This document shows positions 1-33,200 of a DNA stretch of 64,000 nucleotides, piece by piece (position 1 is the first letter of the stretch; every line of letters begins with the position of its first letter). The stretch covers positions 124,001-188,000 of IMG/VR virus record IMGVR_UViG_3300024503_000485. One strand, written 5' to 3'. The notes beneath the pieces are model-generated. The model was not told where the DNA came from and did no database searches. It saw only the letters and a list, made by a program, of their open reading frames with translations. The position numbers were made by a program, and so were the translations under genes.

Positions 1-2894
1 CTTATGTCTCCACCGGCAATTTGGCTTGTTGCTAACAAGTTTGCTTGTTCTTGAGATAATCCAGAAGTGCCCATACCAAGTTTGCTAGCCATTCCGGCTT
101 GACCTTTTTTCATATACCAAGCACTAACTTCCGCAGCAACCTGTGGATCGTTAACTAAATCTGGATTTTTAACTAATCTATCATCACCGTAGATGGCTTT
201 TGATGCAGCGGCATAATTATTTTTACCAGTTAACTGAATAAAACCTCTGCCTCTATATTTCCATCCATCTCCGGGTTCCGTATTCCCCATTTGACGACCC
301 ATTGCTGTGCCGGAACCATACATCATTTCGCCCATTTTTTGCTGGTCGCCTTTGATAGCATTTAGTTCTGCATCGGATTTTCCAGCAGCCCTACTACCAA
401 ATATTTTTCTAATACGATCGTTAGATGTATTAGCATAATTCATATTTTCAGAAATACTCTTACCGCCAGTTTCTTTCATTATGTTGCCTTTGACAGCAGC
501 AACATAAGCAGGATCAGTAATTCCTTGTTTTTTAAGAGCTGCTTCAACTAGAGCCATGTTTTTCTGTTGATCTTGATTTAACGGTCCAGCAGCTCCTGGG
601 GCCGGTCCTCCTGTTGGTGCAGCGGGTGCAGTAGCAGGTGTGGCAGGTGAAGGAGCTCCTCCTCCCATAGTTTTTCTTTCTTTAAAGGCTTTAAATGTTT
701 CTTCAGGACTTGTGTAATTAATTTTCTTCTGTGCTTCTACTTGAGCTTCTGTTGTTTTAGTTGCCTCTTGAGCCGCAGCGGTAGCAGCTTGTGTTGTTTT
801 AGTATGTTCTTGAGTAGCTTTCTTATCTTCCTCGTAAGTTCCACGTTCTATTGCTTTTTGTTTTCTCTTATCGTCTCTATCTTTTTCTTTAGCGTCAAGT
901 TCTTTACGTTGGTCATCCCTTAAGGCTCTACGTCTATCAGCTTCTGCTTTACTAATACCACCAATTGCATTTGGTATTTTCTCTAATAAAGAATCCATCC
1001 AATCTTGCAAAGTCATCCATAAACGTTGGAAATTATCTTTTAAAGCATCAATAATTGTTCCAAATGTCCAACCACTATCATATAATTTCTTAAAGAGATA
1101 AACAACACCTGCAACCGCTGCCGCTACTGCAATAAATGGCGCTGCGGCCGCTAGTACAGGAGCTACGGTTGCCCATACTGCTGATGCCAGTGCTGTTAAA
1201 CCTAAAACATTAACTGCTTGAACTAAATTTGCAGCAGCAGTAATGGCGCTTGAAACTACTATAAGTCCACCTAGTATTCCCATTCCTATAGCTACTTCTT
1301 TTGCATGGTCTGCCACCCAAGTCAATCCTTCAATTAATATAGGAGTTAGTTCTTCTATGGCCGCTGTAAATGACTGCAACATTTTATCTAACAACGGACT
1401 ATTAGCCAATGCTGCCATAAATTTATTTGAAAGGTCAGCTAACTTTTCCATGTTACTTTTCATTTTAGCAGGATCAAGACCTTTGGCGCCTTCTGTTAAT
1501 TGTTTTTGTCTGTCTAATTCTTGTTGTGCCGCTTGTGCTCTTAGACTTCCGTTATCTTTTTCTGCCCTGTTGGCTCGATCTAAATTAGAAACAATACCCT
1601 TGCCCCATTTTTCAGCATCATACGTGGCCAACGTTACTTGAGCAGCATTTTTTTGACTAGCAATAGCACCAGCATTGAATGCTTCGTCAATCTTAAATGC
1701 TCCTTCTCTAGTCATTGTTCCTGATTGTCTAATATCACGAGAAGCCTGTAGCAATGCTTTTGCGGCCTGCGGATTTGTAATCATTAATTGCTGAGCTGCT
1801 TCGCTGTTTAATGATCCTGTGGCTAAAATAGTTTGTGCTGCTTGTTTTTCAGATTCACTCATGCTATCCATTAGCATGTTTAAATTTTTAGCACCTTCTT
1901 TTCCAACTTTAGCCTGTAATATTCTAAACTGCGCATCGGCTTGTCTTGCTTCTTGTTCTCTTTGAAGTATTTCTTTATTCTTACCAGTAAGTTTTGAAAC
2001 AGCATCTAAATTTCTTAGATAGTCACCCGTATCTTTAACTAACTCTTCGTTTGAAACTCTTACTCCGCCGGCGCTCTTTGTGACTATTGCTGAATATCTA
2101 GCAATGCCATTATTAATATCTTCAGTTGAATAACCCAATCTTGCAAGTTCGTCTCCAAGTTGACTATTTCTAATCTTCTGAGACATTTCACTTAAACGTT
2201 TTGCACCTTGAGTTACACTACCGCCAAATAATGCTAAGTTCTCGCTGTTATTTTTAATAATGCTTGTGTACTGGTCAAGTGTTAGCCCTGTTGCCGAAAC
2301 TTGACGTTGCATTTCTTGAATGCTTCCTCCGAAGTTTGCACCAACACTTGCTGCTTTGTTAAACGATTCATAAGTTTTTGTAGCAGCGCCTGCTACAGCA
2401 CCAAAGGCCGACCCAAGAACTCCACCAAAAATTGGAATCTTGCCAATAATGCCGCCAACAGCATTGATGTTGTTTCCCATATTGGCAAGATCATTCATTA
2501 ACCCAAAGAATGATGATCCTAATGCACTGGCACTACTAGCAACTTTTGTAAATCCAGAAGCAACTAATTTTGTCCCTTCAATAAATTTTTCCTGGGCTCT
2601 AAGTTCTTCTTGATATTGTTTTATCTTTTCTTTTTGAGCTTTGTTTTCTTCTTCGTCTTGTTTTATCTTTTCTTTTTGCAGTTTGGTTAATTTTTTAAAT
2701 CCGTCCGATGATTCTTCAAGTTGCTTGTAGAATTTTTTCATCGACTCTGCAATTTGTTTTTCAGATTTGCCGTCTTTGCCTTGTTTAGCAGCCAACAGAG
2801 CAACAGCACGGACAAGTTCCTTGAGGGTGGCTTCGGTAGCCGCGTTGTTTAATTCAATTGGTTGACCGCCTAGATCACCGGTTACTTCTGCCAT
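1..2894 (-). CDS. Tape measure protein with C-terminal GH19 lysozyme/chitinase-like domain (3' end outside the window; absent from the ORF track)
   Basis: ATG at 2894 (MAEVTGDLGGQPIELNNAATEATLKEL); helical Ala/Gln-rich body; hydrophobic stretch near 1100-1300; Pro/Ala linker near 590-660; GH19 motif GDGWKYRGRGFIQLTGKNNY near 210-275 in the same frame. Confidence 0.85.
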   Translation of the reverse strand, partial: MAEVTGDLGGQPIELNNAATEATLKELVRAVALLAAKQGKDGKSEKQIAESMKKFYKQLEESSDGFKKLTKLQKEKIKQDEEENKAQKEKIKQYQEELRAQEKFIEGTKLVASGFTKVASSASALGSSFFGLMNDLANMGNNINAVGGIIGKIPIFGGVLGSAFGAVAGAATKTYESFNKAASVGANFGGSIQEMQRQVSATGLTLDQYTSIIKNNSENLALFGGSVTQGAKRLSEMSQKIRNSQLGDELARLGYSTEDINNGIARYSAIVTKSAGGVRVSNEELVKDTGDYLRNLDAVSKLTGKNKEILQREQEARQADAQFRILQAKVGKEGAKNLNMLMDSMSESEKQAAQTILATGSLNSEAAQQLMITNPQAAKALLQASRDIRQSGTMTREGAFKIDEAFNAGAIASQKNAAQVTLATYDAEKWGKGIVSNLDRANRAEKDNGSLRAQAAQQELDRQKQLTEGAKGLDPAKMKSNMEKLADLSNKFMAALANSPLLDKMLQSFTAAIEELTPILIEGLTWVADHAKEVAIGMGILGGLIVVSSAITAAANLVQAVNVLGLTALASAVWATVAPVLAAAAPFIAVAAAVAGVVYLFKKLYDSGWTFGTIIDALKDNFQRLWMTLQDWMDSLLEKIPNAIGGISKAEADRRRALRDDQRKELDAKEKDRDDKRKQKAIERGTYEEDKKATQEHTKTTQAATAAAQEATKTTEAQVEAQKKINYTSPEETFKAFKERKTMGGGAPSPATPATAPAAPTGGPAPGAAGPLNQDQQKNMALVEAALKKQGITDPAYVAAVKGNIMKETGGKSISENMNYANTSNDRIRKIFGSRAAGKSDAELNAIKGDQQKMGEMMYGSGTAMGRQMGNTEPGDGWKYRGRGFIQLTGKNNYAAASKAIYGDDRLVKNPDLVNDPQVAAEVSAWYMKKGQAGMASKLGMGTSGLSQEQANLLATSQIAGGDI

Positions 2895-2921
2895 TATTCA
2901 AAATCCCAGAAAAGTGCGTAC

Positions 2922-2928
2922 ATAAATA
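2922..2928 (+). promoter_or_regulatory. Late (gp55-type) promoter ATAAATA
   Basis: Matches the core of the T4 late consensus TATAAATA; 34 nt upstream of the ATG at 2963. Confidence 0.65.
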
Positions 2929-2943
2929 CGTATGATTACTTTT

Positions 2944-2950
2944 TATTTAT
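2944..2950 (-). promoter_or_regulatory. Late promoter ATAAATA for the tape measure gene
   Basis: tatttat on the + strand; 49 nt upstream of the ATG at 2894. Confidence 0.65.
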
Positions 2951-2962
2951 CGGGGTTAAAAA

Positions 2963-3823
2963 ATGGTAGAAAATCCATCAATTGCTAAACCAACAAATCC
3001 GTTGGCAGCGTTTTTTAGACAACCAAAGTTATATGTAACTTTACCAAGTCACGGCAAATATTATCCGCCGGGAGTATTGGATCAGAGTGAGAATGGCGAA
3101 TACGCTGTCTATGCTATGACCGCTAAGGACGAACTTATGTTTAAAACTCCCGATGCGTTAATGAATGGTCAAGCAACCGTTGAACTAATAAAAAGCTGTG
3201 TGCCTGCTATTAAAGATCCTTGGAAAATGCCAAGTTTAGATTTAGATGCTGTTTTAATTGCTATTAGAACAGCAACCTACGGTGAAATGATGGAAGTTGA
3301 TGCGGATTGCCCTGAATGCAGTAATCGAAGTACATTTGAAATTAATCTTGTGAGTTATCTTGATAAACTTAATAATTTTAGATATGTAGATCAACTTGAA
3401 GTTCCACCGTTAACTATTACTATTAGACCTTATTCATATCAAGAAATTACTAAGGCTAGTATTAAAGCATTAGAACAACAAAAAGTATTAAACGTTGTTA
3501 CTAACGATTCATTGTCAGATGAAGAAAAATTAGAGCAATTTGGCGAAAGTTTTATTAAATTAACCGAATTAACCGTAGATGTTATTGCAGGATGTATCAC
3601 TAGTATTACTACGCCAGAAGCTACCGTAACTGATTCTGTTATGATTAAAGAATTTATTAACAATGCATCAACTGATGTGTTTAATACAATTAATAAACAT
3701 GTAACAGAAATGAAAGGTAGAATTGATCTACAGACTCAAGAAGTCGAGTGTACAGAATGTCATCATCAATATACTATTAACTTAGTAATGGATCAATCAA
3801 ATTTTTTCGCAGTAAGGTCTTAA
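2963..3823 (+). CDS. Baseplate hub/tail assembly chaperone, T4 gp26-like
   Basis: 286 aa; N-terminus with KLYVTLPSHG and MTAKDEL segments resembling gp26-like proteins; two CxxC pairs (CPEC, CTEC); divergent from the tape measure gene. Confidence 0.6.
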   Translation: MVENPSIAKPTNPLAAFFRQPKLYVTLPSHGKYYPPGVLDQSENGEYAVYAMTAKDELMFKTPDALMNGQATVELIKSCVPAIKDPWKMPSLDLDAVLIAIRTATYGEMMEVDADCPECSNRSTFEINLVSYLDKLNNFRYVDQLEVPPLTITIRPYSYQEITKASIKALEQQKVLNVVTNDSLSDEEKLEQFGESFIKLTELTVDVIAGCITSITTPEATVTDSVMIKEFINNASTDVFNTINKHVTEMKGRIDLQTQEVECTECHHQYTINLVMDQSNFFAVRS

Positions 3824-4035
3824 ACCTCCCAAGGCCGGAGATCTTACATCTTGTTTCAAAATTAGAAAAAGAGGCTAGGGAGATTAAAAAGGATGTCCTC
3901 AAGGCTTGTTGGTATATGCGAGGACTTTCTTATAGTGAAGGTATGAATCTAAGTTATGAAGAGCGCCAAATTATTGGCGAGATTATCAAAGATAATTTAG
4001 AGACCACTAAGAAAAGCGGCCTCCCATTCTTTTAA
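3781..4035 (+). CDS. gp51-like small assembly ORF, probably reached by -1 frameshift (first ATG only at 3916); absent from the ORF track
   Basis: Open frame ...KLEKEAREIKKDVLKACWYMRGLSYSEGMNLSYEERQIIGEIIKDNLETTKKSGLPFF*; the tail resembles the gp51-like YS..E...M...ER pattern. Confidence 0.65.
   Translation, partial: LSNGSIKFFRSKVLNLPRPEILHLVSKLEKEAREIKKDVLKACWYMRGLSYSEGMNLSYEERQIIGEIIKDNLETTKKSGLPFF
3799..3808 (+). other. Candidate -1 programmed ribosomal frameshift site (A AAT TTT overlapping T TTT TTC)
   Basis: Two overlapping X XXY YYZ heptamers in the correct frame just before the stop of 2963..3823; the -1 frame is open 3781-4035. Confidence 0.7.
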
Positions 4036-5145
4036 TTACTTTTTAAAAATACTTGTTGCACCTGATTTAACATTTTCGGTGAACAATTTCTTTTTGTGTT
4101 CTTCAATTTTTCTTTCAAGTGCTTCTGCCAAAGGATTACCTGTGTTAACTTTGCCAGCGGCTTGCACCGAAGGCTGAGCAGGAGCCTTAGCTCTTGATTT
4201 TCTCGGAGCACGTTTCTTTGTCTGCATTGTAGGTTCAACTGCGGGTTCTTGTGTTGCAGCTGGCTGTTCCGGTGCTGGTTGTTGTTGCATATTAGGATTG
4301 TTTGGATTTGCTGTATGGGTTGTTGTTCCACCAACCTTTGATGTTGTTCCACCAGTTGAGCTTGTTCCAGTGCTTACTGCCGGATTTGGTTCGCCGGCTA
4401 AGTTTGCTGCCATTTGTCCAAATGCACCTCCGCCTGCTGCTGGTTTTTCTTGTGCTGCTGGTTGTGCGCCTAATTCTTTTTGTAGTCCTGCAAGGATTCG
4501 TTGTTTACCTTTTTTATCTAGTTTAGCAATCTTAGCTTTAACCTGTGCATAAGGCGTGCCTTGTTGAGCTTGATCTTGTCCTTGACCACCTGCTGCTTGA
4601 CCTTGTGCGGGTTCCATAGTTGGTTCAATTCTTCCAGATGCATCAGGTTGTGCTGCTCCGCCTGCTGCTGGTTTTCCTTTTGCAGGTGCTGGTTGTCCGC
4701 TAGCGGCCGGTTGTTGGCCTCCTGCTTGACCTTGTGCGGGTTCTTCTTGATCTGTATCTTGCATTCCTGCTTTCTTGGCTGCATTAAGGAAAGGATTATT
4801 TTGACCAATCTTTCCTTTTTTCCACATATCTTGAGCAACTTGACGTTTAGTTATGCCTCCTTGACCACCTGCTGCTTGTTGACCACCGGCACCACCTGCT
4901 GCTTGTTGACCACCTGCTGCTTGACCTTGTGCGGGCTCTTCGTCATCTCCTGCACCTGCTACCGTACTTTTACCTGCGGCAAATCCTTTTTTAGCGGCTG
5001 CACCAAGTCCAGCTATACCACCTGCAACTGCGCCAACGCCTTTGGCAGCAGTTCCTACAGCTTTGCCAACTGCACTACCAATTTTATTCATCAATGGGCC
5101 TTCGGCAAGTTCTTTATCTTCGGTTATGAATTCATTTAATCTCAT
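4036..5145 (-). CDS. Gln/Ala/Gly/Pro-rich low-complexity putative virion (internal/ejected) protein
   Basis: 369 aa; starts MRLNEFITE; repeats of EPAQGQAAGGQ; lies downstream of the late promoter at 6691. Confidence 0.75.
   Translation of the reverse strand: MRLNEFITEDKELAEGPLMNKIGSAVGKAVGTAAKGVGAVAGGIAGLGAAAKKGFAAGKSTVAGAGDDEEPAQGQAAGGQQAAGGAGGQQAAGGQGGITKRQVAQDMWKKGKIGQNNPFLNAAKKAGMQDTDQEEPAQGQAGGQQPAASGQPAPAKGKPAAGGAAQPDASGRIEPTMEPAQGQAAGGQGQDQAQQGTPYAQVKAKIAKLDKKGKQRILAGLQKELGAQPAAQEKPAAGGGAFGQMAANLAGEPNPAVSTGTSSTGGTTSKVGGTTTHTANPNNPNMQQQPAPEQPAATQEPAVEPTMQTKKRAPRKSRAKAPAQPSVQAAGKVNTGNPLAEALERKIEEHKKKLFTENVKSGATSIFKK
4582..4935. repeat. 30-bp exact direct repeat (4582-4611 and 4906-4935) plus a 20-bp partial copy at 4721-4740
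   Basis: ttgaccacctgctgcttgaccttgtgcggg occurs twice; it encodes PAQGQAAGGQ. Confidence 0.9.
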
Positions 5146-11180: not shown

Positions 11181-11209
11181 AGTTTAATATAATTTTTATT
11201 AAAGGTCAA
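11181..11209 (-). promoter_or_regulatory. Sigma70-type promoter TTGACC-N17-TAAACT
   Basis: -35 at 11209-11204; -10 at 11186-11181; ATG of gp47 follows after 6 nt. Confidence 0.7.
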
Positions 11210-12054
11210 TCCCAATCATTACCATTATCGATAGTAACAGGAGCGGTAGCAGGACCACTACCACTACCCCATTGACGAGTCCAACTTGGATTCATACCGT
11301 TCATTTCCAGTATGTCGTCTCTGATGTTCTGGTTACGTTTTTCAATGTTAATGATCCGCACGAATGAATTAGTGACAGCAGCAGTATAATAAGCAAAAGG
11401 ATTATCGGATTTGCTTTCATCAAATTGTAGTCCTATCTGTGTTAGCTGTAAAATAGCCTGCCCTTTCATTTCGTCATTATAGGTATATCCTCTAACGTTG
11501 CCTCTAGTCGCATATCGGTCACATAATTTTAAAAACATTCGAGCTAGATTACTAGTCATTTGGCCGTGGTCTTTGCTAAATGCTCCGGTGTTAATATCAC
11601 CTTTCCAGTGGCTTTTTACAACACATATTAGATTACCGTTGGTATCAAATTTCCAATGTTGAAAGGGCGGAAAATTTACTTTTTCATGACCGTCGCTGGT
11701 ATTTTTAACGGTCTTTTTTCTTCCTGGAGCAAGAGGAATATGTTCAAAGGTCATAACTCTAAAGACTACATCATTCTTGTCAATTTTTTTATAGTCTATT
11801 TCAAATTCTTTTGCGGGAATTTTTTTACCTTGCGCTAACATTGCTGCTTCGTGGTTAATTTTTGCTAACCTAGAAGCTCTGTTTCTTTTTGCTTCGGCAA
11901 TTGTCCTGATATTAATTTTGGACAAGTTTGGTACAATCATATCATACTCTAAAAATGCTTTATCTGTGCATGAGCAGTATGTATTTTTGCTTAAATGTAT
12001 CTCTCTTAGTAAGTCTTTGTTTGTTAGGTACTTAATTTTAGGTACGGTATTCAT
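11206..12054 (-). CDS. gp55: Late-transcription sigma factor, T4 gp55-like
   Basis: YLTNKDLL N-terminus; region-2-like segment YTYNDEM...QFDESKSDNPFAYYT...NSFVRIINIEK. Confidence 0.85.
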   Translation of the reverse strand: MNTVPKIKYLTNKDLLREIHLSKNTYCSCTDKAFLEYDMIVPNLSKINIRTIAEAKRNRASRLAKINHEAAMLAQGKKIPAKEFEIDYKKIDKNDVVFRVMTFEHIPLAPGRKKTVKNTSDGHEKVNFPPFQHWKFDTNGNLICVVKSHWKGDINTGAFSKDHGQMTSNLARMFLKLCDRYATRGNVRGYTYNDEMKGQAILQLTQIGLQFDESKSDNPFAYYTAAVTNSFVRIINIEKRNQNIRDDILEMNGMNPSWTRQWGSGSGPATAPVTIDNGNDWD

Positions 12055-21276: not shown

Positions 21277-24200
21277 ATGGCAAAGTTTTTTCCAAAAAGT
21301 CAATTACCTATTAGAAAGTCATCTGATTTATTACCAAAGGTATTTCAAACAGATGCTAATGATAAATTTTTATCCGGCGTTTTAGATCCGTTACTGCAAC
21401 CTGGTACACTAGAGAAGAACGTAGGATATGTTGGGCGTAGATACGGTAAAACATACAACGGCTCAGACATTTATTTAGATACCGACGCTACTCTTAGAAG
21501 TAGATATCAGTTGGAGCCTGGCGTTGTTCTTAAAAAAGATGGTAAGACACAAAATTTTTATGACTTCATTGACTTTAAAAATATTTTAAAATATTTTGGA
21601 AATAATGAAGATAGAGATGATCTAATTGATCAACACCAGCACTATAGTTGGAACCCTCCTGTTGACTGGGATAAGTTTATTAATTATAGAGAATATTTTT
21701 GGATGCCAAGCGGTCCTCCACCAATTAGAATTTTAGGCCAAAGTTCTTCTGTAATAAGCACATATAGAGTTAAGCTCGGAGAAGCGTCTTCTTTTATTTT
21801 TTCTCCAGACGGCTATACAAACAATCCTAGAATAACATTATATAGAGGACAAAAATACAAATTTATTGTAAATGTTCCGGGTAACGGATTTGTTATTAGA
21901 ACATCATATGATACTGGTTCATTGACATTTAATCCTGATTTATTCTATCCTCAAGGATCTATTGTTGTATTCAATGGTTCTGTATGGAAAGCAAAAGTTC
22001 CAGTATCTCCGGCCGACGGTAGCACAATAACAACAGAATCTCAAGACTGGGAATTTGTTGAAATTGTAAATGCAAATTCAGCAGCACTTGACTACACTAA
22101 AGGAATTACAAATTTTGGCATTGAGAATGGAACACTAACATTTGATGTGCCTTACGATGCGCCGGATATTCTTTATTATCAAAGTATTACTGATCCAAAT
22201 AAATTTGGTCAGTTTATTATTTCCGACATTGAAGAAAATTCAAAAATTAATATTAACGATGATATTATTGGAAAGACAACATATACAAGTAGCAACGGAA
22301 TTGAACTAAGCAATGGTATGATTGTTAATTTTGGCGGTGTTGTTACCCCAGAGAAATATTCAAAAGGAAATTGGTTAGTTGAAGGTGTTGGTAAAGCAAT
22401 CTCATTGACCAACTTTGATGATTTAGTTGTTCCTGTATTAACATCAGATGTTCCAGAAGTATTATTTGATAATGAAGGTTTTGACACAGCACCTTTTGAT
22501 GATGCAAGCTCGTATCCGGGAACAAAAGATTATATCACAATAGCTAAAAGTAGTAAAGATTTAAATCCTTGGTCACGATATAATCGTTGGTTTCATAGAA
22601 GTGTATTGGAACTTTCTTTTAAATTATCAGGAGAAGATTTTTACCACGACGAAGCAGCTAGAGCAAAACGTCCTATTATAGAATTTTTACCAAATTTAAA
22701 ATTATACGAACACGGAGTATTTGCTAAGGAAACCGTAGATTACATTGACACATTTACGTCAGACGTATTTTCTAAAATTGAAGGAAGTACTGGTTATAGT
22801 ATTGACGGTGAGCCGTTGTTTAACGGAGCAAGAATTCTTGTAACGGCCGACACTGATAGTTTAGCTAATAATAAAATTTATCAAGTTAAATTCTTCACTC
22901 AAAACGGTCAAAATCAAATCACCTTAATAAAAGTTGATGATACTGAATCCATCATTGGAGAAACCTTATTAGTTCGCCGTGGAAAGAAAAATAAAGGAAC
23001 AATGTTCTACTATGATGGAACCGCTTGGTTAAGTAGCCAAGAAAAAACTAAAGTTAATCAAGCACCTTTATTTGATGCATTTGATGAAAATGGTGTAAGT
23101 TTTTCTGATAAAGATACGTATCCAGTTTCAACATTCCGCGGTACTAAAATTTTAGCATACAAAGAAAGCACAGGAGTTGTTGACCTAGAACTTGGATTTC
23201 CAATTAGCTATCTTAATATCAGCAACGTTGGAGATATAAGTTTTGAATTTGTATGGGATATAGAATCCTTTACCTATGAAGTTTTAAGAAAATCATATTC
23301 AAAAAATATTAATACTGGTTTCTGTAAATTTAACCTAACAGACGAATATGTTAATCATTGGATTGAAACTGAACAAAAATATCTACAACCAATCATTGAT
23401 TCGCAGGTAATTACCACAGCAACTGACACGGTTTATTTTAATACCGTTGATTGGTTTAAAGTAACTGATCAAGACGAAATTTATTTTTATAAGAACGGAG
23501 AGCGTTATACAGAATCATATACAAGACAAGGTGGAAATTTTATTTTTGCTACACCGTTTGCTGTAAAAGATGTTCTTGTAATAAAAATATTTTGTAATTT
23601 AATTCCAGAAGAAGGATATTATGAAATTCCTGTAGGTTTGGAAAAAAATCCGTTAAACAACGAACTAACAGATTTTACGTTTGGACAAGCAGTTGATCAT
23701 ATTTCGTCTGGATTAGAATTTTACAATGGATTCTCTGGACTTGTTGTAGGAAATAATTCTTTAAGAGACATTCATGGATTCCAGGCATATACTAAGAGAT
23801 TTTTAAAACATGAAAGTGTGGCACCTGTTGCATTAACATTGCTAGTTGATAAGCAGGTTAATTTAATTAAAGCTCTCCGATATGCTAAAAAGTCTTATAC
23901 TGATTTTAAACATAATTTTATTAAAATTTCTGGAGAATTAGATTTTGATGGAGATATTCCAAAGCTAGTTGACAATATTATTAATGAATTAACAAGAGGT
24001 AAAAATCCTTCAAGCCCGTTTGTAAATTCTGATATGATCGGTAGCGGAGCATATACAAATTTAATTTACGAAGTTGAAGATCCAGATATTAACACATTTG
24101 TTATTTCAGATAAATTTGATTTAAAAACTTTAAGTAATCGAGCTGTCTACCTATACATTAATAATCAACAATTAATTAATGGATTTGATTACGAATTTAA

Positions 24201-27200
24201 TAGTGACTTTTCTTTTGTTAATATTTTAAAAACACTTAATGTTGGAGACATACTTGAAATTAGAGAATATGTTTCTTCAGGATTTAATCATATCCCTCAA
24301 ACACCGACAAAGATTGGATTGTTTAAAAAGTTTGTACCTGAAAAATTCTTAGATGACACCTTTGTTGAACCAAAATATATGATTCAAGGACACGACGGTA
24401 GCCTTACAACAGCATTTAATGACTATCGAGACGATGCGCTTCTTGAATTAGAATTAAGAATTTTTAATAACATCAAAAAAGAATATGATGAAAATATATT
24501 TGATATTGATGCAACCGCTGGCGGATATTATAAGACTGGAATATTTGAATACAATCAAATTATACAAATAAACACACAAGAATTTTTAAAATGGATTGCA
24601 GATACAAATATCGATTATGTAAGTAATAGCTATTTTGACAGCGAAAATTCTTTCACTTATACATATTCTAATATGTCTGACCCAGCCGGATTAGAAAATT
24701 TACCAGGTTGGTGGAGAGGAGTCTACAAGTATTTTTACGATACAGATCGTCCACATCGCTGCCCATGGGAAATGTTAGGATTTTCTATTAAACCGACATG
24801 GTGGGAAAGTGAATACGGACCTGCACCATACACTAGAAACAATTTACTTTTATGGGAAGACCTGGCTGCCGGCCTAATTAGACAAGGTCCAAGAGCAGGT
24901 GTTCATAAACGATATGTAAGATCTACTTTGTTAACACACATTCCTGTAGATGGAGATGGTAAACTATTAAGCCCTCTAGATTCAAATCTAGCACAAAATT
25001 TTTCTTTGATTAATAATCAAGGGGATTTTAACTTTGGCGATATTTCCCCTGCAGAACATGCATGGTATAGCAGTAGTGAATATCCATTTGCAACAATTAT
25101 TGGAATGGCATTGTTAAGACCTTTTGAATTTGTAGGCAAAAATTTTGACAATTCAAAAATTGTAAGAAACAAATTAAATCAATTAGTACATACCGATACA
25201 GGTATCTTTGTTAAAGTTGAAGATTTAGTTGGATCAAGTTCTGGCGGATATTTAACCAGCGGATTAGTTTCTTATATTGTAGATTATTTAAAGAGCCATA
25301 ATATTAATGAAAATGTGTTGCAGGAAAAATTAGATGAAATCGATGTTTACCTAACACATAGATTATCTGGATTTGTTGATCAAACACAACAACGATTTAT
25401 TTTAGATTCAAAAAATCCTAATTCTACTTCGGCAAATATTTTTGTTCCGGTAGAAAATCAGGAAATTTATTATAATGTTAGTGCTCCAATTGCAAGTATA
25501 ATTTATAGCGCGGTCATTGTTGAAAAAATGACCAACGGTTGGAAAATTAGCGGCTATGACTTTTTAGATCCGCATTTTACATATTTTGCTCCGGTGATTA
25601 GTCAAATAGATCCTCTTATTTCAGTTGGCGGAGTTTCTGAAAATTTTGTTAATTGGACAGAAGATAAATTTTATGGAAATGGTGTAGTAGCAAGATATAA
25701 TAATGAATATTATAGAAGTGTTAAAAGCCATCAAAGCGGATCCACATTTGATTTAACCCTGTGGAAAAAACTTCCAGACCTTCCTAAGAAAGACGACGTT
25801 CAAGCATTTAAGAGAAGAACATTTAACACCATAAGAGAACAAAAAATAAGTTATGGAACTACCATCGGCACAATCCAAGGAGTAGTTGATTTCTTATTAG
25901 GTTATGAACAATATCTAATTTCTAAAGGATTTAAATTTGATAGATACGATACAGACAGCAAGGTAACTCAAGATTGGTTCACTAGTGCTAAAGAATTTAT
26001 GTACTGGACACAGCATAATTGGGCTCCTGGATCTTTATTAACTTTAAGTCCTGCTGCTGAAAAAATGGATGTATCTTATCCAATTGGTGTTCCTGATAAT
26101 CTATTAGATAGCTTTTATGAATATCAAGTGTTTAGAGGTGACGGTCAGCCATTGACTCCTAATTTCTTAAACATAAAAAGAGATTTTCAAAATATAACTA
26201 TTGAAACTACAAACACAGCAGAAGGAATTTATTTCTTTAAAGCTCACTTAGTGTTAAAAGAACACGTTGCTATTTTCGATGACCGAACCGTTTTCAATGA
26301 TGTTATCTATGATAAAACAACAGGCTATCGTCAAGAAAGAGTTAAGGCAAGAGGTTTTAGAACCGTTGACTGGGACGGTGATTATACAAGTCCCGGATTC
26401 TTATTTGATAATGTTAATATTATAGCATGGCAACCTTATACTGATTACAGATTGGGTGATATAGTTAATTACAAAAGTTATAACTGGGTAACAAAATCTA
26501 ATCACACATCTACCGATCAATTTGTAAATGCATTCTGGACTAAACTTGATTCAACACCGAACAAGAGATTAGTTCCAAACTTTGATTATAGAATTAATCA
26601 ATTTGAAGATTATTATAATCTTGATGCAGATGGTCTTGGGTCAAGCCAACGAGATCTTGGTCGACACGCCATCGGTTATCAAACTAGAGAATACTTACAA
26701 AATCTTGCAGAAGATGACGTAACACAATTTCAGTTATATCAAGGTTTTATTAGAGAAAAAGGTACATTAAATGCCGCTGTTAAAATATTTGATAAACTAA
26801 GCAAAACAACAGAAGATAGTATTGTTTTAAACGAAGAATGGGCGTTTAATGTTGGTACCTTAGGCGGAGTAGACGAGTTAAATGAAGTTGAATTTGCATT
26901 TAATAAAGACTCCTTACAAGTAAATCCTCAGCCAATGATATTTGTGTCATCGGCTTATACAGGAGTAATACTTGATCAATATCTAAGAATCCCTGCATCG
27001 GACTTTACAAATGCTCCGTCGCCTTTTACAACTTCGATTATTCCTAAAACAGATTTTGATCAATTTCAGTCTGCGGGTTACGTAAAACTTGACCAAGTTG
27101 ATTTTGTTATTAAGAATAGATCAGATTTAGAAACATTAGATATTACACAAGTAAAAGACGGCGACCATTTTTGGATTACATTCGATAATTCAGCATGGAC

Positions 27201-30200
27201 GGTTTTAAGATTTACTAGAAAGCCATTATTAACTTTAATTTCAGCAATTAAAACAGGTACAACAATTGAAATTACATTTAATCGTAGACACGCTTTTATT
27301 GTTGACGATTACATTGGCATTAACGATGTTCCTAACCTAACCGGCTTTTATAAAATTAATGAAGTAACTCTTACTTCTGTTATCATTGCCTGCGCATCTG
27401 ATGCTAAAGATCCATTAGTTGATACAAGTACATTAATTCGTGTTTACGGATTAGACAATGTTAGATTTTCTTCTGGATCGGATATAGATCAAGAATATGT
27501 TGCATTATTGCCTAACAATTCAAAATTGTGGTTTGATTCTAATGATAACGGACTATGGGAAGTTGTACAAAAAAATAAAGTCTTTAGCTATAAATCCTTA
27601 ACTGATTATGGAACTACCGTGCCCGAAGGAACAGGACATGCAGTTTGTTATGTTGAAAGATTACAACAAACTATTACAAGCATGCCTTCAAATTCAATGG
27701 TTCTTGTTTATGTTGAGGGACCTACAGGTTTAAAAATTAAACAGACATTTGCCCCTGAGCCTGAACTATATTTGTTGCTTTCTAATTCTTTTGGAGAAGA
27801 ACTTGCAGTAAGTCCTGACGGACATTTCTTAGCAGTTGGATGTCCTAGAGCATCGGGCGTGCCTTCAGCATATATTGGTGTTTTTGATCCTACAGCAAAT
27901 TATGAAATAGGTGATGTTGTTGAATATGCTGGAAAATTGTGGAAGGCTACAACAGCAGTAGTAGGAGACGGCAGTACAATTGATATTCAAAGTAATGATT
28001 GGGAGCCTACATCTTTATTAACTTATGATCCAAATTTTGGCCGTGGCGAAGGATTTAGAAATCAAGGAGCTGTTTCGATTTATGTTTGGAATAATCAAAA
28101 CTGGTCATTAACAACTACACTAGTAAGTCCAAGACCTGCGTTTGATGAAAATTTTGGATCTAATATTTCTATTTCAAAATCTGGTTCAGATTATTGGATG
28201 GCTGTTTCAGCTCCTGGTTCGTTAGATAGCAGGGGTAGAATTTATCTTTACAGGTATAATAGTGAAACTTTGGCCTGGGAACAACACGAAAATAACAATT
28301 ATATTGGAGTATATGTTTCAGATCCTGCTAGACAATATCCAAAAGGATCAATTGTATGGTGGAATAATTCCTACTGGAAAGCGGTTGAGGATACCAACGG
28401 TGACGGTAGTACCATTAGTATCAGTTCACCCGACTGGATAAAAATTGATGACATATCTAGTCAATCATCTTTACCAACAAACGTTTCTATTGAAGATGAC
28501 GGATCAACAATTTCGTCTGGATTATTAAGTGAAAGTGATCTAGCAGAACTTACAAAACAAGGTGATATGTTTGGTTCTGCAATGGCAATGAATAAAGATG
28601 GATCTATATTAGTTGTCGGTGTTGCTGATAGTGATGGTATTTACTTTGCAAATTATAAAGGAATCTGGTCAGCCACCCAAGAATATATTGCAGGAGATGT
28701 TGTAAAATATCAAGGTTACTATCATAGACTAACAAATGTTCGTCCTGAAGATCCTGTAGATTCAGCAACCTATAGAAGTTTTGGAGAATACCCAGACGAT
28801 GGATTGCCATGGACTAACGTGGGCGACAGCACTATTCCGTATTCAACAGGTAAAGTTTATATCTACCAAAGAGATAGTAATAGTGTTTACAAACTAAAAC
28901 AAACAATAACTGCTGGATCAATTGGATTATTTGATGATACTGGCAATAACGAATCTATCACCGTTGGTGATAAATTTGGATTCTCTGTTGATGTTGATGC
29001 AACAGGTCAACACATTGTTATTAGTGCTCCTCAGGCAGATATTAATTTACAAAATCAAGGTGCAGTATATTATTTCTCTGCAACTAGTTTAACAAATCCA
29101 GAATGGAGATTAAAACAAAAATTAGAAAGTTTTGAAGAATATAATAATTTGTTGTTTGGTTCTGATGTATCTATTAGTTCTGGAACAGAAAGAATAGTTG
29201 TTGGCGCAAAAAATGCTCCATACAAATCTTATGCATATTTTGAAACAGGAACTACATTTGATAAAAATTCAACAATATTTTCAACATTTAACGGTTATTC
29301 GGGACAGGTATATTCTTTTGAAAGAGTTAGTGGAAAATATTTCTTAACAGAAAAATTAGAAGCAGACGTAACCAATAATGAATCTTTTGGTTATGCCATT
29401 GATGCAACATCCGATGTTATTGTAGTTGGTTCTCCTAACTACAATAACGGTGACGGTTTAGTTAGAACATTTAGAAAAGATACTTCTGTTAAATCTTTAA
29501 AAACATTAGCCGTTCAAGAACAATTAATTGATATTTCTAAAATTAAAAATATTTCTTTAATTGATGCAGATAAAAATGTTAAGATAAGCGACATTGATTT
29601 TATTGATCCAATTAAATTAAAAATATTAGGACTTGCAGAACAGGAACTTAATTTTAAAACACCGTACGATCCAGCAATTTATACCAACGGAACAGAAGAA
29701 ACCGTAGTAGATCCTGACGCAGCTTGGTTTACAAAGAACGTTGGAAAACTATGGTGGAATTTAAACACAGCTAAGTGGTTGTACTATGAGCAAGGCGATA
29801 TTGCTTATAGAAACGGTAATTGGGGACAATTAGCTAAAGGATCTACTATTGATGTTTATGAATGGGTTGAAACTACTCTATTACCTAGCGAATGGAGTGC
29901 CCTTGCTGACACCACTGCAGGATTAACTGAAGGAATCTCTGGACAGCCATTATATCCTAATGATGATGTATATTCTGTAAAACAATTTTATAATGAAATT
30001 ACACAACAGGTAACAGAAATAAAATATTATTATTGGGTTAAGGGCAGCACCGTTGTCCCACAAAAAGTTAATAGAAAATTGTCAGCAGGAGAAGTTGCAG
30101 CGTTGATTGAGACGCCAATTTCAAGCGGATATCCAATATTAGCATTGTTAGATAGTGATAAAATTTTAGCATACAATTTTAATAAATTTGTAACTTCTGG

Positions 30201-33200
30201 AAGAGCATTATTAAACATTGAATTCTACACAAATGAATCTTCAGTTAATCCTGTGCATAGAGAATATGTATTATTAGCTGAAGGCGTTGCAGACAACCTT
30301 CCTCCAGAAACTTTAGAGACTAAATGGATCGATAGTTTAGTTGGATTTGATCAAGCAGGTAATACCGTGCCTGATCCTAAACTTTCTACTAAAGAAAAAT
30401 ACGGATTATCATTCAGACCTCGTCAGAGTATGTTTGTAAATCGTTCTGAAATTTTAAAAATTGTTATTACTAATATTAATTCATTATTACTAACAAATCC
30501 ATATTCTGAAATTTTAAATTTTGATAATTTAAATTCAACAGATTTAGAACCAGATGAAAAATTAAACGAATATGATGTAGCAGTAGATACAATAACTGAC
30601 TTAGAACAAATTGGTGCAATTCGTGTTCGCCAAGCAGTATTACAAGCAAATATTGTTAACGGCGAAGTTGATACAATTGATATTGTAGATTCTGGATTTG
30701 GTTATAAAAATGCTCCGTACATTGAAATACAAGGTGACGGAACAGGAGCCAGGGCTTATATTACAATTGATAATCAAGGTAGAGTAAGTAGTGTTAAAAT
30801 TCAAACAACCGGAAGAAAATATACAACCGCCACCGTTAAAATTCGAGAGTATTCAGTATTAGTTAGAACTGATGAAACAATTAATAATTTCTGGAGTATC
30901 TATTCTTGGGATCAACAAAGAAGAATTTTCTATAAGAGTAAGTCTCAAGGTTATGATGTAAGAAACTATTGGTCATATATCGATTGGTGGAAACCAGGAT
31001 ACTCAACCTCAACTAGAATATTATATGAAGTTCCAAGTTTGTATTTAGAACCAACAATATATACTGAGCCAGGAGATTTAATTAGAGTTAAAGAATATGC
31101 TAACGGCGGATGGGCAGTACTTGAAAGAACAGCAGACGGCTCTGGTGAAATTTTAGGAAAATATCTGTTAGTTGCTAGACAAAACGGAACAATTGAATTT
31201 AAAGATTCTCTTTATAATACTAAAACAACCGCTATTGGTTTTGATAATGTTGGATATTATGATACAGCATTATATGACTTAGAACCTTCAAGAGAATTAA
31301 GGATTATTTTAAATTCTATTAAAACTGATTTATTTGTTGGAGATCTTAAAGTTGAGTGGAATAAATTATTCTTCACTTGTGTAAGATATGCTTTCTCAGA
31401 AAATCAGCCAATTTTCTGGGCATTTAAAACAAGTTTTATTAATGCATTACATAATGTTGGATCGTTAGAACATAAAGTTTCTTACAAGAACGATAACCTT
31501 CCTGCGTATCAAAAATATCTTGAAGAAATTAAACCATACAAAACTTCTATTAGAGAATATACAAGTCGTTATGTAAATCAAGAATCAACAAATACAGATA
31601 TTTTAGATTTTGATTTACCTCCCGTATATTCCACACGCGATAATAAAATTGTTCCAGTGAATAATGGATACAATTTATTTGATCAGTATCCATGGAAGTG
31701 GTGGTATGACAACAAAGGATTCTCAGTAGTATCTATTGAAGTTTCATATGCAGGTGCAGATTATACATCTGTTCCTACCGTTCTTATTGAGGGCAACGGA
31801 ACAGGAGCAAAAGCTAAAGCATATATTTCAAATGGTAAAGTTTCTGGTATCACAATGGTTGATATTGGAGAAGGGTATACTGAAACACCAACAATTACGT
31901 TAGTTGGTGGCAACGGTTCGTCTTTATTAAAAGCAAAAGCAATTGCAATTTTAGGTCAAACAAAAGCAAGAACATTTAATCTTGGAATTAAGTTTGACAG
32001 AATTTCTAAAGAAGGCATTTATAACGCATTTACGCATTCTCAAACATTTACTGCATCAGGACGTACTGCGGTTTTTGATTTAGCATTTGCGCCAACAAGA
32101 GATAAATCGAAAATTACTATTGTTAAAAACAAACAATTAATATTGAATAATGAATATAGTTTATCATTGTTCAAAACATCTACCGATGATTATAAGATCC
32201 TAAAAGGTAGATTGATTTTTGTTGACCCGCCAGCTAAAGATGATGTTATTACAATAACATATGAAAAGAATGATGAATTGTTAGATGCTGTTAACAGAAT
32301 TAACAAGTATTATTCACCAACTAGCGGAATGATTGGAAATGAAGTTGGACAATTAATGACCGGTATTGATTTTGGCGGAGTTCAAGTTCAAGGAACAACA
32401 TTTGATGTAACTGGCGGATGGGACGCTCTTCCGTGGTTTACTGATAGCTGGGACAGCGTTGACTCTAACGACGATTATTATGTAATTGTTGACGGTAGTA
32501 CCTCTGGGATTGAACTACCAGAAGCTCCTGTAGAAAATCAAATAATTACAATTTATCTACAAAGAGCAGGAACATCTAAACCGATTAGAATTGACGATCC
32601 ACACTTTGATCATGCCGGCGACTCGGCATTAGTAACAAATTCTAATGCTCTTATGCCAACGTTTGTTGGAGATGGTTCTACAAAAATTGTTTCTATTGAA
32701 AATTATTTCCAAACATATGCAGGCGATGTATTAATTTTCCGTCCTGCAGAAAGCGACGGATCTGTTAATATTACAGATACAAACCTTCTCGATTCTAAGA
32801 TTAGTGGCGGAACATTAGCATCAATGAGCGGTGCATATTCAACTGCTACAGGAATGACAGCAGAAGAAATTGTAATTAGCGGTGGCGCATTTAATACGCC
32901 AGATCATACACCTGCTCCTGAAGAAAATGTACCGGGACAAATACTTGATAGTGTTTCTATTAAGGTGTTCCAAACTACAATCAGTGGTGCTGCAACTATT
33001 CAAAATAAAGTTGTTATTTCAGATGGAATTACTTCTCGATATGCCATTGATTTAACTATAATAGAAGAAGCATCAATATTGGTCTATGTAGATAAAATTT
33101 CCTATGTTTCATTTGGAGATAGCACAACCAGTTATAGCATAGATTTTACAACCAACGAAATTGTGTTTAATACTCCACCTGCGCTAGGCTCTACAATTGA

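Follow-up and report, generated by a model that had tools for sequence, protein, structure and literature searches.

Does the baseplate-hub assembly gene of a giant T4-related phage encode one protein, or does the start-less reading frame that follows it belong to the same gene? The question arises from a 64,000-nucleotide stretch of the IMG/VR virus record IMGVR_UViG_3300024503_000485 (positions 124,001 to 188,000 of that record), hereafter the window, in which an ORF at 2963..3823 on the plus strand ends in a putative slippery sequence. The initial annotation proposed that a -1 ribosomal frameshift fuses a gp26-like and a gp51-like chaperone, as in the G/GT system of phage lambda. Our comparative analysis confirms the sequence features and strongly supports this interpretation, although the frameshift itself has not been shown experimentally and neither the longer product nor its junction peptide has been detected directly. 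The phage, however, is a jumbo phage with T4-type core genes rather than a T4-like phage in the narrow sense, and its nearest cultured relatives are Phosso, Atu_ph07, PA5oct and Rak2-like phages.

ORF 2963..3823 encodes a 286-aa protein of the gp26/gp51 family of baseplate-hub assembly proteins (PF12322, 74.1 bits against a cut-off of 24.5, E 1.7e-20; phrog_150, E 1.5e-23). gp26 and gp51 of T4 are paralogues that both belong to PF12322. The match to phrog_150 covers profile positions 9-234 of 282, so that the product ends where T4 gp26 also ends (235), whereas gp51 runs to position 280. The protein contains two CxxC pairs (C116/C119 and C263/C266), a putative zinc ribbon, which are nearly invariant in 68 cores and have corresponding Cys pairs in T4 gp26 and gp51. 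The structure predicted by AlphaFold2 has a pLDDT of 91 and a pTM of 0.85.

The last codons of the ORF are CAA TCA AAT TTT TTC GCA GTA AGG TCT TAA, and contain the overlapping heptamers A AAT TTT (3799-3805) and T TTT TTC (3802-3808), both of which are in X XXY YYZ phase. The -1 frame is open from 3781 to 4035, and its first ATG, GTG or TTG is at position 3916. A slip at either heptamer gives the same product of 357 aa, composed of 282 zero-frame residues and 75 residues from the -1 frame, with the junction ...DQSNFFRSK.... The extension at 3808..4035 on the plus strand comprises these 75 codons and the stop codon.

An in-phase slippery heptamer and a -1 ORF of 62-97 aa are present at the same place in all 205 related loci examined, of which 124 are jumbo-phage loci with a complete gene end, including those of Rak2-like, PA5oct and Atu_ph07 phages, and 81 are from T4-like cyanophages. 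The heptamer is located 1-11 codons before the stop. In-phase X XXY YYZ heptamers occur at 0.0044 per codon elsewhere in these genes, yet one is present at the homologous position in 74 of 74 jumbo-phage representatives with under 70% amino-acid identity. T TTT TTC is in phase in 61 of the 74 representatives and in 81 of 81 cyanophage loci, and the other jumbo-phage representatives have A AAT TTT (10) or T TTT TTT (3). Of 44 sites preceded by AAT, 42 form the full decamer. Among the 64 representatives with T TTT TTY, the preceding codon varies (AAT, AGT, GAT, CAT, GGT, GTT, GCT) but always ends in T, against 64% elsewhere; the first Phe codon is always TTT, against 73% elsewhere; and the second Phe codon is TTC in 61 of 64, against 27% expected (binomial p 3e-31). 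The conservation in more than 200 loci from independent samples led us to reject a sequencing error or a pseudogene.

The zero-frame tail after the slip site and its stop codon (3809..3823, plus strand; AVRS) are unconstrained in the zero frame. In relatives the tail is 1-11 codons long and varies in sequence, whereas the same nucleotides read in the -1 frame give the conserved R-x-(K/R)-(I/L)-L. The -1 peptide is conserved from the first residue after the slip (FFR-x-K/R-I/L-L..PEEI...) in about 110 distinct sequences. In 39 of the 74 representatives there is no ATG, GTG or TTG in the -1 frame from -30 to +45 nt of the heptamer, and PA5oct has none anywhere in the -1 ORF. The initial annotation held that an independent start in homologues would count against a frameshift; an ATGA stop/start overlap does occur, but in only 6 of 74 representatives, and those loci still keep the heptamer.

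A hairpin downstream of the slip site (3812..3847, plus strand) is the putative stimulator of the frameshift. The stem AAGGUCU/AGAUCUU proposed in the initial annotation is part of a longer 10-bp stem formed by 3812-3821 with 3838-3847, which starts 3 nt after T TTT TTC, a short spacing, and 6 nt after A AAT TTT, a normal one. The 60 nt after the heptamer have a minimum free energy of -14.8 kcal/mol (z -2.6). RNAalifold applied to all 23 relatives of the window clade returned no consensus structure, and the hairpin became visible only when its pairs were counted explicitly: 84% of cells pair, against 32-55% when the partner is slid, 6 of 10 pairs change on both sides, and 0 of 500 shuffles reach the observed score. 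Across the 74 representatives, the mean folding z after the heptamer is -1.72, against -0.31 for an upstream control (p 1.6e-9), although Rak2-like phages have only weak predicted structures after the site.

The gene is a monocistronic unit flanked by genes on the opposite strand, 3..2894 with a lysozyme-like domain and 4036..5145 of unknown function. The sequence CATAAATA at 2921..2928 on the plus strand, about 35 nt before the start codon, resembles a T4-type late promoter, and this role is inferred; a gp55-like late sigma factor is encoded at 11206..12054. Metatranscriptome contigs begin at 2950-2961 and end at 4020-4104, at both gene borders. They cover about 2950-4050 with no mismatch or indel, and in three of four runs there is no coverage on the flanks. 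One transcript thus spans both ORFs.

The extension is predicted to form a four-helix domain (AlphaFold2 pLDDT 89; core and extension were analysed apart) and belongs to a family with 4406 members. It matches only the C-terminal ~35-45 residues of gp51, and for the clade of the window this similarity is weak, with hhalign probabilities of 66% and 34% (E 5.7e-5 and 4.3e-4), always on gp51 residues 224-257. A profile of the extension hits gp51 C-termini consistently at 10-13 bits, with no reversed decoy in the top 25, and one of 64 extensions hits phrog_634. Scans of the extension of the window alone gave nothing significant in PHROGs or in a copy of Pfam without PF28602, which is carried by gp51 homologues, and hhalign of full-length in-frame long forms against gp51 reported only the N-terminal local match. 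Sequence searches of the PDB with core, extension and gp51 profiles gave no relatives. Foldseek comparison of the extension model with BFVD found only small uncharacterised phage ORFs, and did not link it to gp51.

The link to gp51 is clear for the cyanophages, the extension of which matches the gp51 C-terminus with a probability of 90.5% (E 1.4e-6), but is only distantly similar in sequence to that of the window. The cyanophage -1 ORF contains, in the same frame, the short "gp51" of the databases, the baseplate hub assembly catalyst of about 45-70 aa (phrog_634) that is annotated in cyanophages and marine vibriophages. In S-RIM8 the annotated 45-aa gp51 is in the -1 frame, which is open from AGT TTT TTC at the end of the gp26-like gene, and the same holds in 81 of 81 related loci. 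This ORF has been discussed as an independent truncated gene, and Sullivan et al. 2010 (PMC3037559) reported it as ~20% of the normal length and lacking the first ~200 residues, with no mention of a frameshift. Our literature searches for frameshifting of gp26/gp51 or in the baseplate hub found nothing relevant.

Some jumbo phages provide a natural control, as they carry two tandem genes at the same syntenic locus (L126, L127, L131 and L132). A profile search found proteins of 319-351 aa with the extension fused in frame at the C-terminus, and in 4 of 4 informative contigs each is directly preceded by a short PF12322 paralogue. The long form is a continuous ORF with the junction ..xF-R-x-K-I/L-L, with one Phe and no slippery site, and the short paralogues keep the heptamer in only 1 of 5 cases. 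T4 likewise uses two genes, which encode diverged paralogues on opposite strands, with gp26 short and gp51 long. T4 gene 26, which also has an annotated internal-start product, 26', is followed by gene 25 and has the non-slippery GAG TTC TTT. The control on the T4 side is small, because a search for relatives of T4 gp26 in IMG/VR returned only near-identical T4-type loci; it consists of T4 itself and the annotation of three other T4-type phages that have gene 25 downstream and a divergent upstream family member. The family acts in baseplate hub assembly in T4 (PMC3004832); according to the T4 review, both gp26 and gp51 are needed for hub assembly, and gp51 is absent from virions.

The resemblance to lambda G/GT and to E/E+E' of P2 (Xu, Hendrix and Duda 2004; Christie et al. 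2002) is in mechanism only. In these systems, as at the locus studied here, an in-phase heptamer is positioned a few codons before the stop of an assembly-factor gene, the short and the extended product share the N-terminal part, and the arrangement is conserved while the sequences diverge; P2 also appears to use a T-rich slippery run. At our locus this likeness is one of sequence architecture; the products were not observed. No tail-assembly-chaperone family in Pfam or PHROGs hits the locus, and Foldseek against the PDB gives best E values of 0.6 for the core and 6.5 for the extension, while BFVD lists a "tape measure chaperone" only at E 2.5. The gene is not located between tube and tape-measure genes, nor next to a co-oriented tape-measure gene, and its family functions in hub assembly and not in coating the tape measure.

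It is very likely that gene 2963..3823 and the start-less -1 ORF are one gene decoded in two ways. In this model, most ribosomes terminate at 3821-3823 and produce the 286-aa gp26-like protein, whereas a fraction slip back one base on A AAU UUU UUC (3799-3808), probably helped by the hairpin, and continue to 4033-4035 to produce the 357-aa protein with the same core and a helical C-terminal domain that may be equivalent to the C-terminus of T4 gp51. UUUUUUC is probably not one of the classic high-efficiency bacterial sites such as A AAA AAG, and both the occurrence of slippage and its efficiency are inferred, as is the joint action of the two forms in hub assembly. The phage would thereby obtain a short and a long form of one assembly factor at a ratio fixed by the efficiency of the slip.

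The alternative that survives best, although it is unlikely, is that the -1 ORF is a separate small gene for a free gp51-like peptide of about 40-75 aa, translated by termination-reinitiation or coupling at the gp26 stop, or from a non-canonical or internal start. Atu_ph07, Phosso, and a few metagenomic relatives, 6 of 74 representatives in all, have an ATG overlapping the stop, and Phosso, Turkey5, and the cyanophages are annotated in this way, many cyanophages having an internal Met that annotators use. The window itself has GAGG 8 nt before an ATT at 3883, and an internal Met at 3916. A separately initiated small protein is thus possible in some lineages. However, more than half of the representatives have no start codon near the junction, and the conservation of the peptide begins exactly at the slip site, upstream of any candidate start. 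A separate gene also gives no reason for the nucleotide-level conservation of an in-phase heptamer, nor for its loss in most short paralogues where a separate long-form gene exists, and the natural in-frame fusions show, and full-length T4 gp51 suggests, that the domain works as a C-terminal extension of the core.

Less likely still is a change of frame in the RNA, in which RNA polymerase slips on the T6 run, T7 in a few relatives, and deletes or adds one U in a fraction of transcripts. The RNA contigs show an unaltered T6, although assembled contigs drop rare variants and cannot exclude a minority of edited transcripts. One clade has only five T's (GTA AAT TTT TCA), yet keeps the arrangement through the in-phase A AAT TTT. 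The run is strictly conserved in phase, which transcriptional slippage does not need, and slippage of bacterial RNA polymerase may usually require runs of about 8 or more. In addition, the covarying hairpin is positioned where a ribosomal stimulator would be. Finally, although an FF motif also ends T4 gp26 (EFFELL) and some short paralogues, and the short paralogue of L126 keeps TCT TTT TTC with no -1 ORF following, the reading of the heptamer as a by-product of a conserved Asn/Ser-Phe-Phe motif and AT-rich codon usage, with the open -1 frame a coincidence or a decaying remnant, is effectively refuted by the codon choices at the site, by the conserved and confidently folding extension domain, and by the A AAT TTT clade, in which the zero frame reads NFS* and the second Phe exists only in the shifted product.

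A broader reading, which we consider somewhat more likely than not, is that the gp26/gp51 pair is the counterpart of the G/GT principle in the T4 superfamily, and that the single frameshifted gene is the widespread arrangement, perhaps the ancestral one. A hub-assembly factor would have to be made as a short and a long form in a fixed ratio, which cyanophages and most jumbo phages would achieve by a -1 slip on UUUUUUC, whereas T4 and some jumbo phages would have replaced the slip by gene duplication. If so, every "truncated gp51" annotation is wrong, T4 gp26 and gp51 should act as one hetero-oligomeric chaperone, and frameshift-programmed stoichiometry arose independently in two unrelated tail-assembly systems.

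The arrangement gives a concrete, testable model in which gp26 and gp51 are the short and long versions of one factor, and would explain the long-noted "truncated gp51" of cyanophages and vibriophages. It would mean that thousands of database entries split one gene into two or miss the second part; the extension family alone has 4406 small "hypothetical proteins". The contrast between a putative frameshift and duplicated genes at the same locus offers a natural experiment on why the fixed-ratio expression of nested proteins is selected in virion assembly.

The ORF at 2963..3823 (+) encodes 286 aa and ends with the codons GAT CAA TCA AAT TTT TTC GCA GTA AGG TCT TAA. Two overlapping heptamers, A AAT TTT (3799-3805) and T TTT TTC (3802-3808), are both in the X XXY YYZ phase. 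The -1 frame is open from 3781 to 4035, and its first ATG, GTG, or TTG codon is located at position 3916. A slip at either heptamer gives the same 357-aa product, composed of 282 zero-frame residues and 75 residues from the -1 frame, with the junction DQSNFFRSK. The initial annotation, which described the heptamers, the start-less -1 frame, and a possible downstream stem, is accurate in every detail.

The ORF belongs to the family PF12322 (74 bits against a cut-off of 24.5) and to phrog_150, "baseplate hub". Both gp26 and gp51 of phage T4 belong to these same families, and are therefore paralogues. On the phrog_150 profile of 282 positions, gp26 covers positions 14-235, gp51 covers positions 13-280, and the ORF from the window covers positions 9-234. 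Therefore, the zero-frame product ends where gp26 ends, a few residues after a conserved Phe-Phe, whereas gp51 carries about 45 more residues. The phage is not T4-like in the narrow sense. Its best matches, with 33-37% identity, are the jumbo phages Phosso, Atu_ph07, the PA5oct group, and Rak2-like phages. The window also encodes a gp55-like late sigma factor, SbcCD-like gp46/47, and gp5- and gp6-like baseplate proteins. In addition, a single ORF of 4561 aa (21277..34962, +) lies inside the structural gene block. An ORF of at least 964 aa (3..2894, -), which runs off the start of the window, is divergent from the gp26-like gene and contains a lysozyme or chitinase-like domain near residues 865-935 (phrog_181, 3.9e-33; Pfam Glyco_hydro_19, 1.1e-6). 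The gene at the same position in phage CBB (CBB_251) encodes a virion protein identified by mass spectrometry, and the ORF may encode a hub, tape-measure-like, or lytic structural protein.

The peptide encoded after the slip has tblastn matches directly downstream of the gp26 homologue, in the -1 frame, in Atu_ph07, Phosso, and PA5oct. We examined 37 IMG/VR loci with 39-100% identity to the window, three Rak2-like phages, 80 more distant IMG/VR loci out of at least 596 that exist, and 81 loci related to T4-like cyanophages. Every locus with a complete gene end has an in-phase slippery heptamer 1-11 codons before the stop, which is followed by a -1 ORF of 62-97 aa. Among 74 jumbo-phage representatives with less than 70% amino-acid identity, the site is T TTT TTC in 61, A AAT TTT in 10, and T TTT TTT in 3, whereas elsewhere in the same genes in-phase heptamers occur at 0.0044 per codon. 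The codon choices in the 64 representatives with T TTT TTY point to selection on the nucleotides rather than on the protein. The codon before the T run encodes N, S, D, H, G, V, or A, but always ends in T, whereas elsewhere 64% of comparable codons end in T. The first Phe codon is always TTT, against 73% elsewhere, and the second Phe codon is TTC in 61 of 64, against 27% expected (p 3e-31). Of 44 sites preceded by AAT, 42 form the double site A AAT TTT TTC. In the clade with the sequence GTA AAT TTT TCA TAA, the T run has only five bases, the zero frame reads NFS followed by the stop, and the second Phe exists only in the shifted product.

The -1 ORF is coding from the slip site onward. About 70 distinct jumbo-phage extensions all begin with FF(R/H/I/Y/Q)-x-x-(L/I)-(L/I)-..-P-E-E-(I/V) and share later motifs such as WYMRG.SY.E..NLS.EER, and the 77 distinct cyanophage extensions begin with FFR(I/V/L)(A/G)(L/M).H. 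By contrast, the zero-frame tail after FF varies in length and sequence. In 39 of the 74 representatives there is no ATG, GTG, or TTG codon in the -1 frame from -30 to +45 nt of the heptamer, and only 6 have an ATG overlapping the stop. PA5oct has no canonical start codon anywhere in the -1 ORF, which is unannotated there. The extension belongs to a large family, with 4406 proteins at E <= 0.01 in a collection of 5.8 billion proteins and no Pfam annotation. It is confidently predicted to fold as four helices (pLDDT 89), and the model of the core is also confident (pLDDT 91, pTM 0.85). Some marine relatives (loci L071, L079, L087, and L096), with extensions of 93-97 aa, carry an additional 15-20-residue acidic, Pro/Ser-rich tail after the conserved extension. 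The extension in locus L032 (3319..3582) ends in a different 88-aa tail (..KKSVCLFSNYLVKILEFL) from that of its near-identical sister L031, which is likely due to a late indel or an assembly error.

A profile of 64 extensions, searched against 1.84 billion representative proteins, identified 796 hits. The top 150 include some 25 proteins of 319-351 aa in which the extension is the in-frame C-terminus of a PF12322 core. Their junction, x-F-R-x-K-(I/L)-(I/L), contains a single Phe and no slippery run, and they are therefore not homopolymer sequencing errors. In all four contigs with enough upstream sequence, the long gene is directly preceded by a short PF12322 paralogue of 276-297 aa. The syntenic locus is the same as in the window, with a divergent large structural gene upstream, and SbcCD downstream in L132. 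Some jumbo phages carry tandem short and long paralogues (loci L126 820..2744, L127 196..2114, L131 1959..3790, and L132 4171..6002) instead of one frameshifted gene. The short paralogues end with SFFND, DFFQKK, NFLSST, DYIKTK, and NFLPETK.., and only one of the five keeps T TTT TTC. The gp26 of T4 ends with KEFFELL, encoded with GAG TTC TTT, and its gene is followed by gene 25, with gene 51 divergent on the other strand. The annotations of the three other T4-type phages examined show the same layout, with a gp26-like gene followed by gene 25 and a divergent upstream gene of gp51 size or family. The T4 record also annotates an internal-start product, 26' (2303..2590, -, in the T4 locus L004), inside gene 26, so that T4 gene 26 also yields two nested products by a different route. 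The heptamer is thus conserved where a -1 extension follows, and is mostly lost where the long form has its own gene, which is the strongest argument that the site is functional.

The 60 nt after the heptamer fold into a 10-bp hairpin, formed by positions 3812-3821 and 3838-3847 (dG -14.8 kcal/mol, z -2.6), which contains the AAGGUCU/AGAUCUU stem proposed in the initial annotation. In 23 relatives, 84% of cells pair, against 32-55% when the 3' partner is slid. Six of the ten pairs show changes on both sides, for example G-C to A-U through synonymous Lys and Ile codon changes, and none of 500 shuffles reaches the observed score. Other clades have hairpins of their own 2-7 nt after the site, or 18 nt after it in Atu_ph07, whereas Rak2-like phages have only weak ones. 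Over the 74 representatives, the mean folding z after the site is -1.72, against -0.31 for a control segment (Mann-Whitney p 1.6e-9). Riverine metatranscriptome contigs from three runs begin at 2950-2961 and end at 4020-4104, with no mismatch, no indel, and no coverage of the opposite-strand flanks, whereas a fourth run also covers the flanks. The sequence CATAAATA at 2921-2928, located about 35 nt before the ATG, resembles a T4 late promoter. This suggests a discrete monocistronic late transcript that spans both ORFs with an unedited T6 run in its consensus, although rare variants cannot be excluded from contigs.

It is highly likely that the mechanism is -1 ribosomal frameshifting, as the initial annotation had proposed, although this has not been demonstrated directly. 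Separate initiation or reinitiation of a small protein is possible in the few lineages with ATGA, but it cannot explain the heptamer, the start-less majority, or the conservation upstream of any start. Transcriptional slippage is unlikely given the five-T clade, the strict phase, and the unedited RNA consensus. That the site is a by-product of coding is effectively excluded by the codon statistics and by the loss of the heptamer where the long form has its own gene. We found no description of a frameshift in gp26/gp51 or baseplate-hub genes in the literature outside subscription sources, so that an earlier description cannot be excluded, and public records annotate the two parts separately or omit the second.

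The architecture is the same as that of lambda G/GT, to which the initial annotation had likened it, with a heptamer a few codons before the stop, predicted nested short and long products, and an assembly factor. However, there is no hit to a tail-assembly-chaperone family and no fold match, and the gene is flanked by opposite-strand genes rather than positioned before a tape-measure gene. It probably works like G/GT but is not a member of that family. It is a member of the gp26/gp51 family, the T4 members of which are listed as hub assembly chaperones, with gp51 absent from virions (PMC3004832). Neither CBB_250 nor CBB_249 appears in the retrieved part of the mass-spectrometry table of the CBB virion, whereas the neighbouring CBB_251 does (PMC5259590).

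The evidence that the extension from the clade of the window is gp51-like is weak but consistent. Residues 42-75 of the extension were placed by hhalign on residues 224-257 of gp51 with 66% probability and E 5.7e-5, and with 34% and 4.3e-4 when a broader alignment was used. This match is about as strong as that of the core to gp51 in the same test (E 1.7e-5), where homology is independently established through Pfam, and the two matches are colinear. An extension HMM hits the last ~30 residues of gp51 homologues, with no reversed decoy among the top 25, and one extension hits phrog_634, "baseplate hub assembly catalyst". By eye, gp51 IFKLLLNPDEVF lines up with FFR-x-KLL..PEEI. The gp51 homologues (P0001-P0092) all carry the Pfam family PF28602 alongside PF12322 in the precomputed annotation.

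For cyanophages the link to gp51 is clear. In S-RIM8, the gp26-like gene ends with AGT TTT TTC GGA TAG, and the -1 frame is open from that heptamer to the stop of the annotated 45-aa "baseplate hub assembly catalyst" (gp51), the ATG of which lies in the same frame. The cyanophage extension matches the C-terminus of gp51 with 90.5% probability and E 1.4e-6. The 45-70-aa gp51 of T4-like cyanophages lies in the -1 frame, open from an in-phase T TTT TTC at the end of the gp26-like gene, in 81 of 81 loci (L140 1869..2069 and L144-L223), and the annotated Met is not always present (for example in L147). It was previously recorded, without mention of frameshifting, that gp51 of cyanophages and marine vibriophages is about 20% of the normal length and lacks the first ~200 residues, yet resembles the C-terminus of gp51 (Sullivan et al. 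2010, PMC3037559). The position of the cyanophage gp51 in the -1 frame accounts for this truncation, as the probable frameshift supplies the "missing" part from the gp26-like gene.
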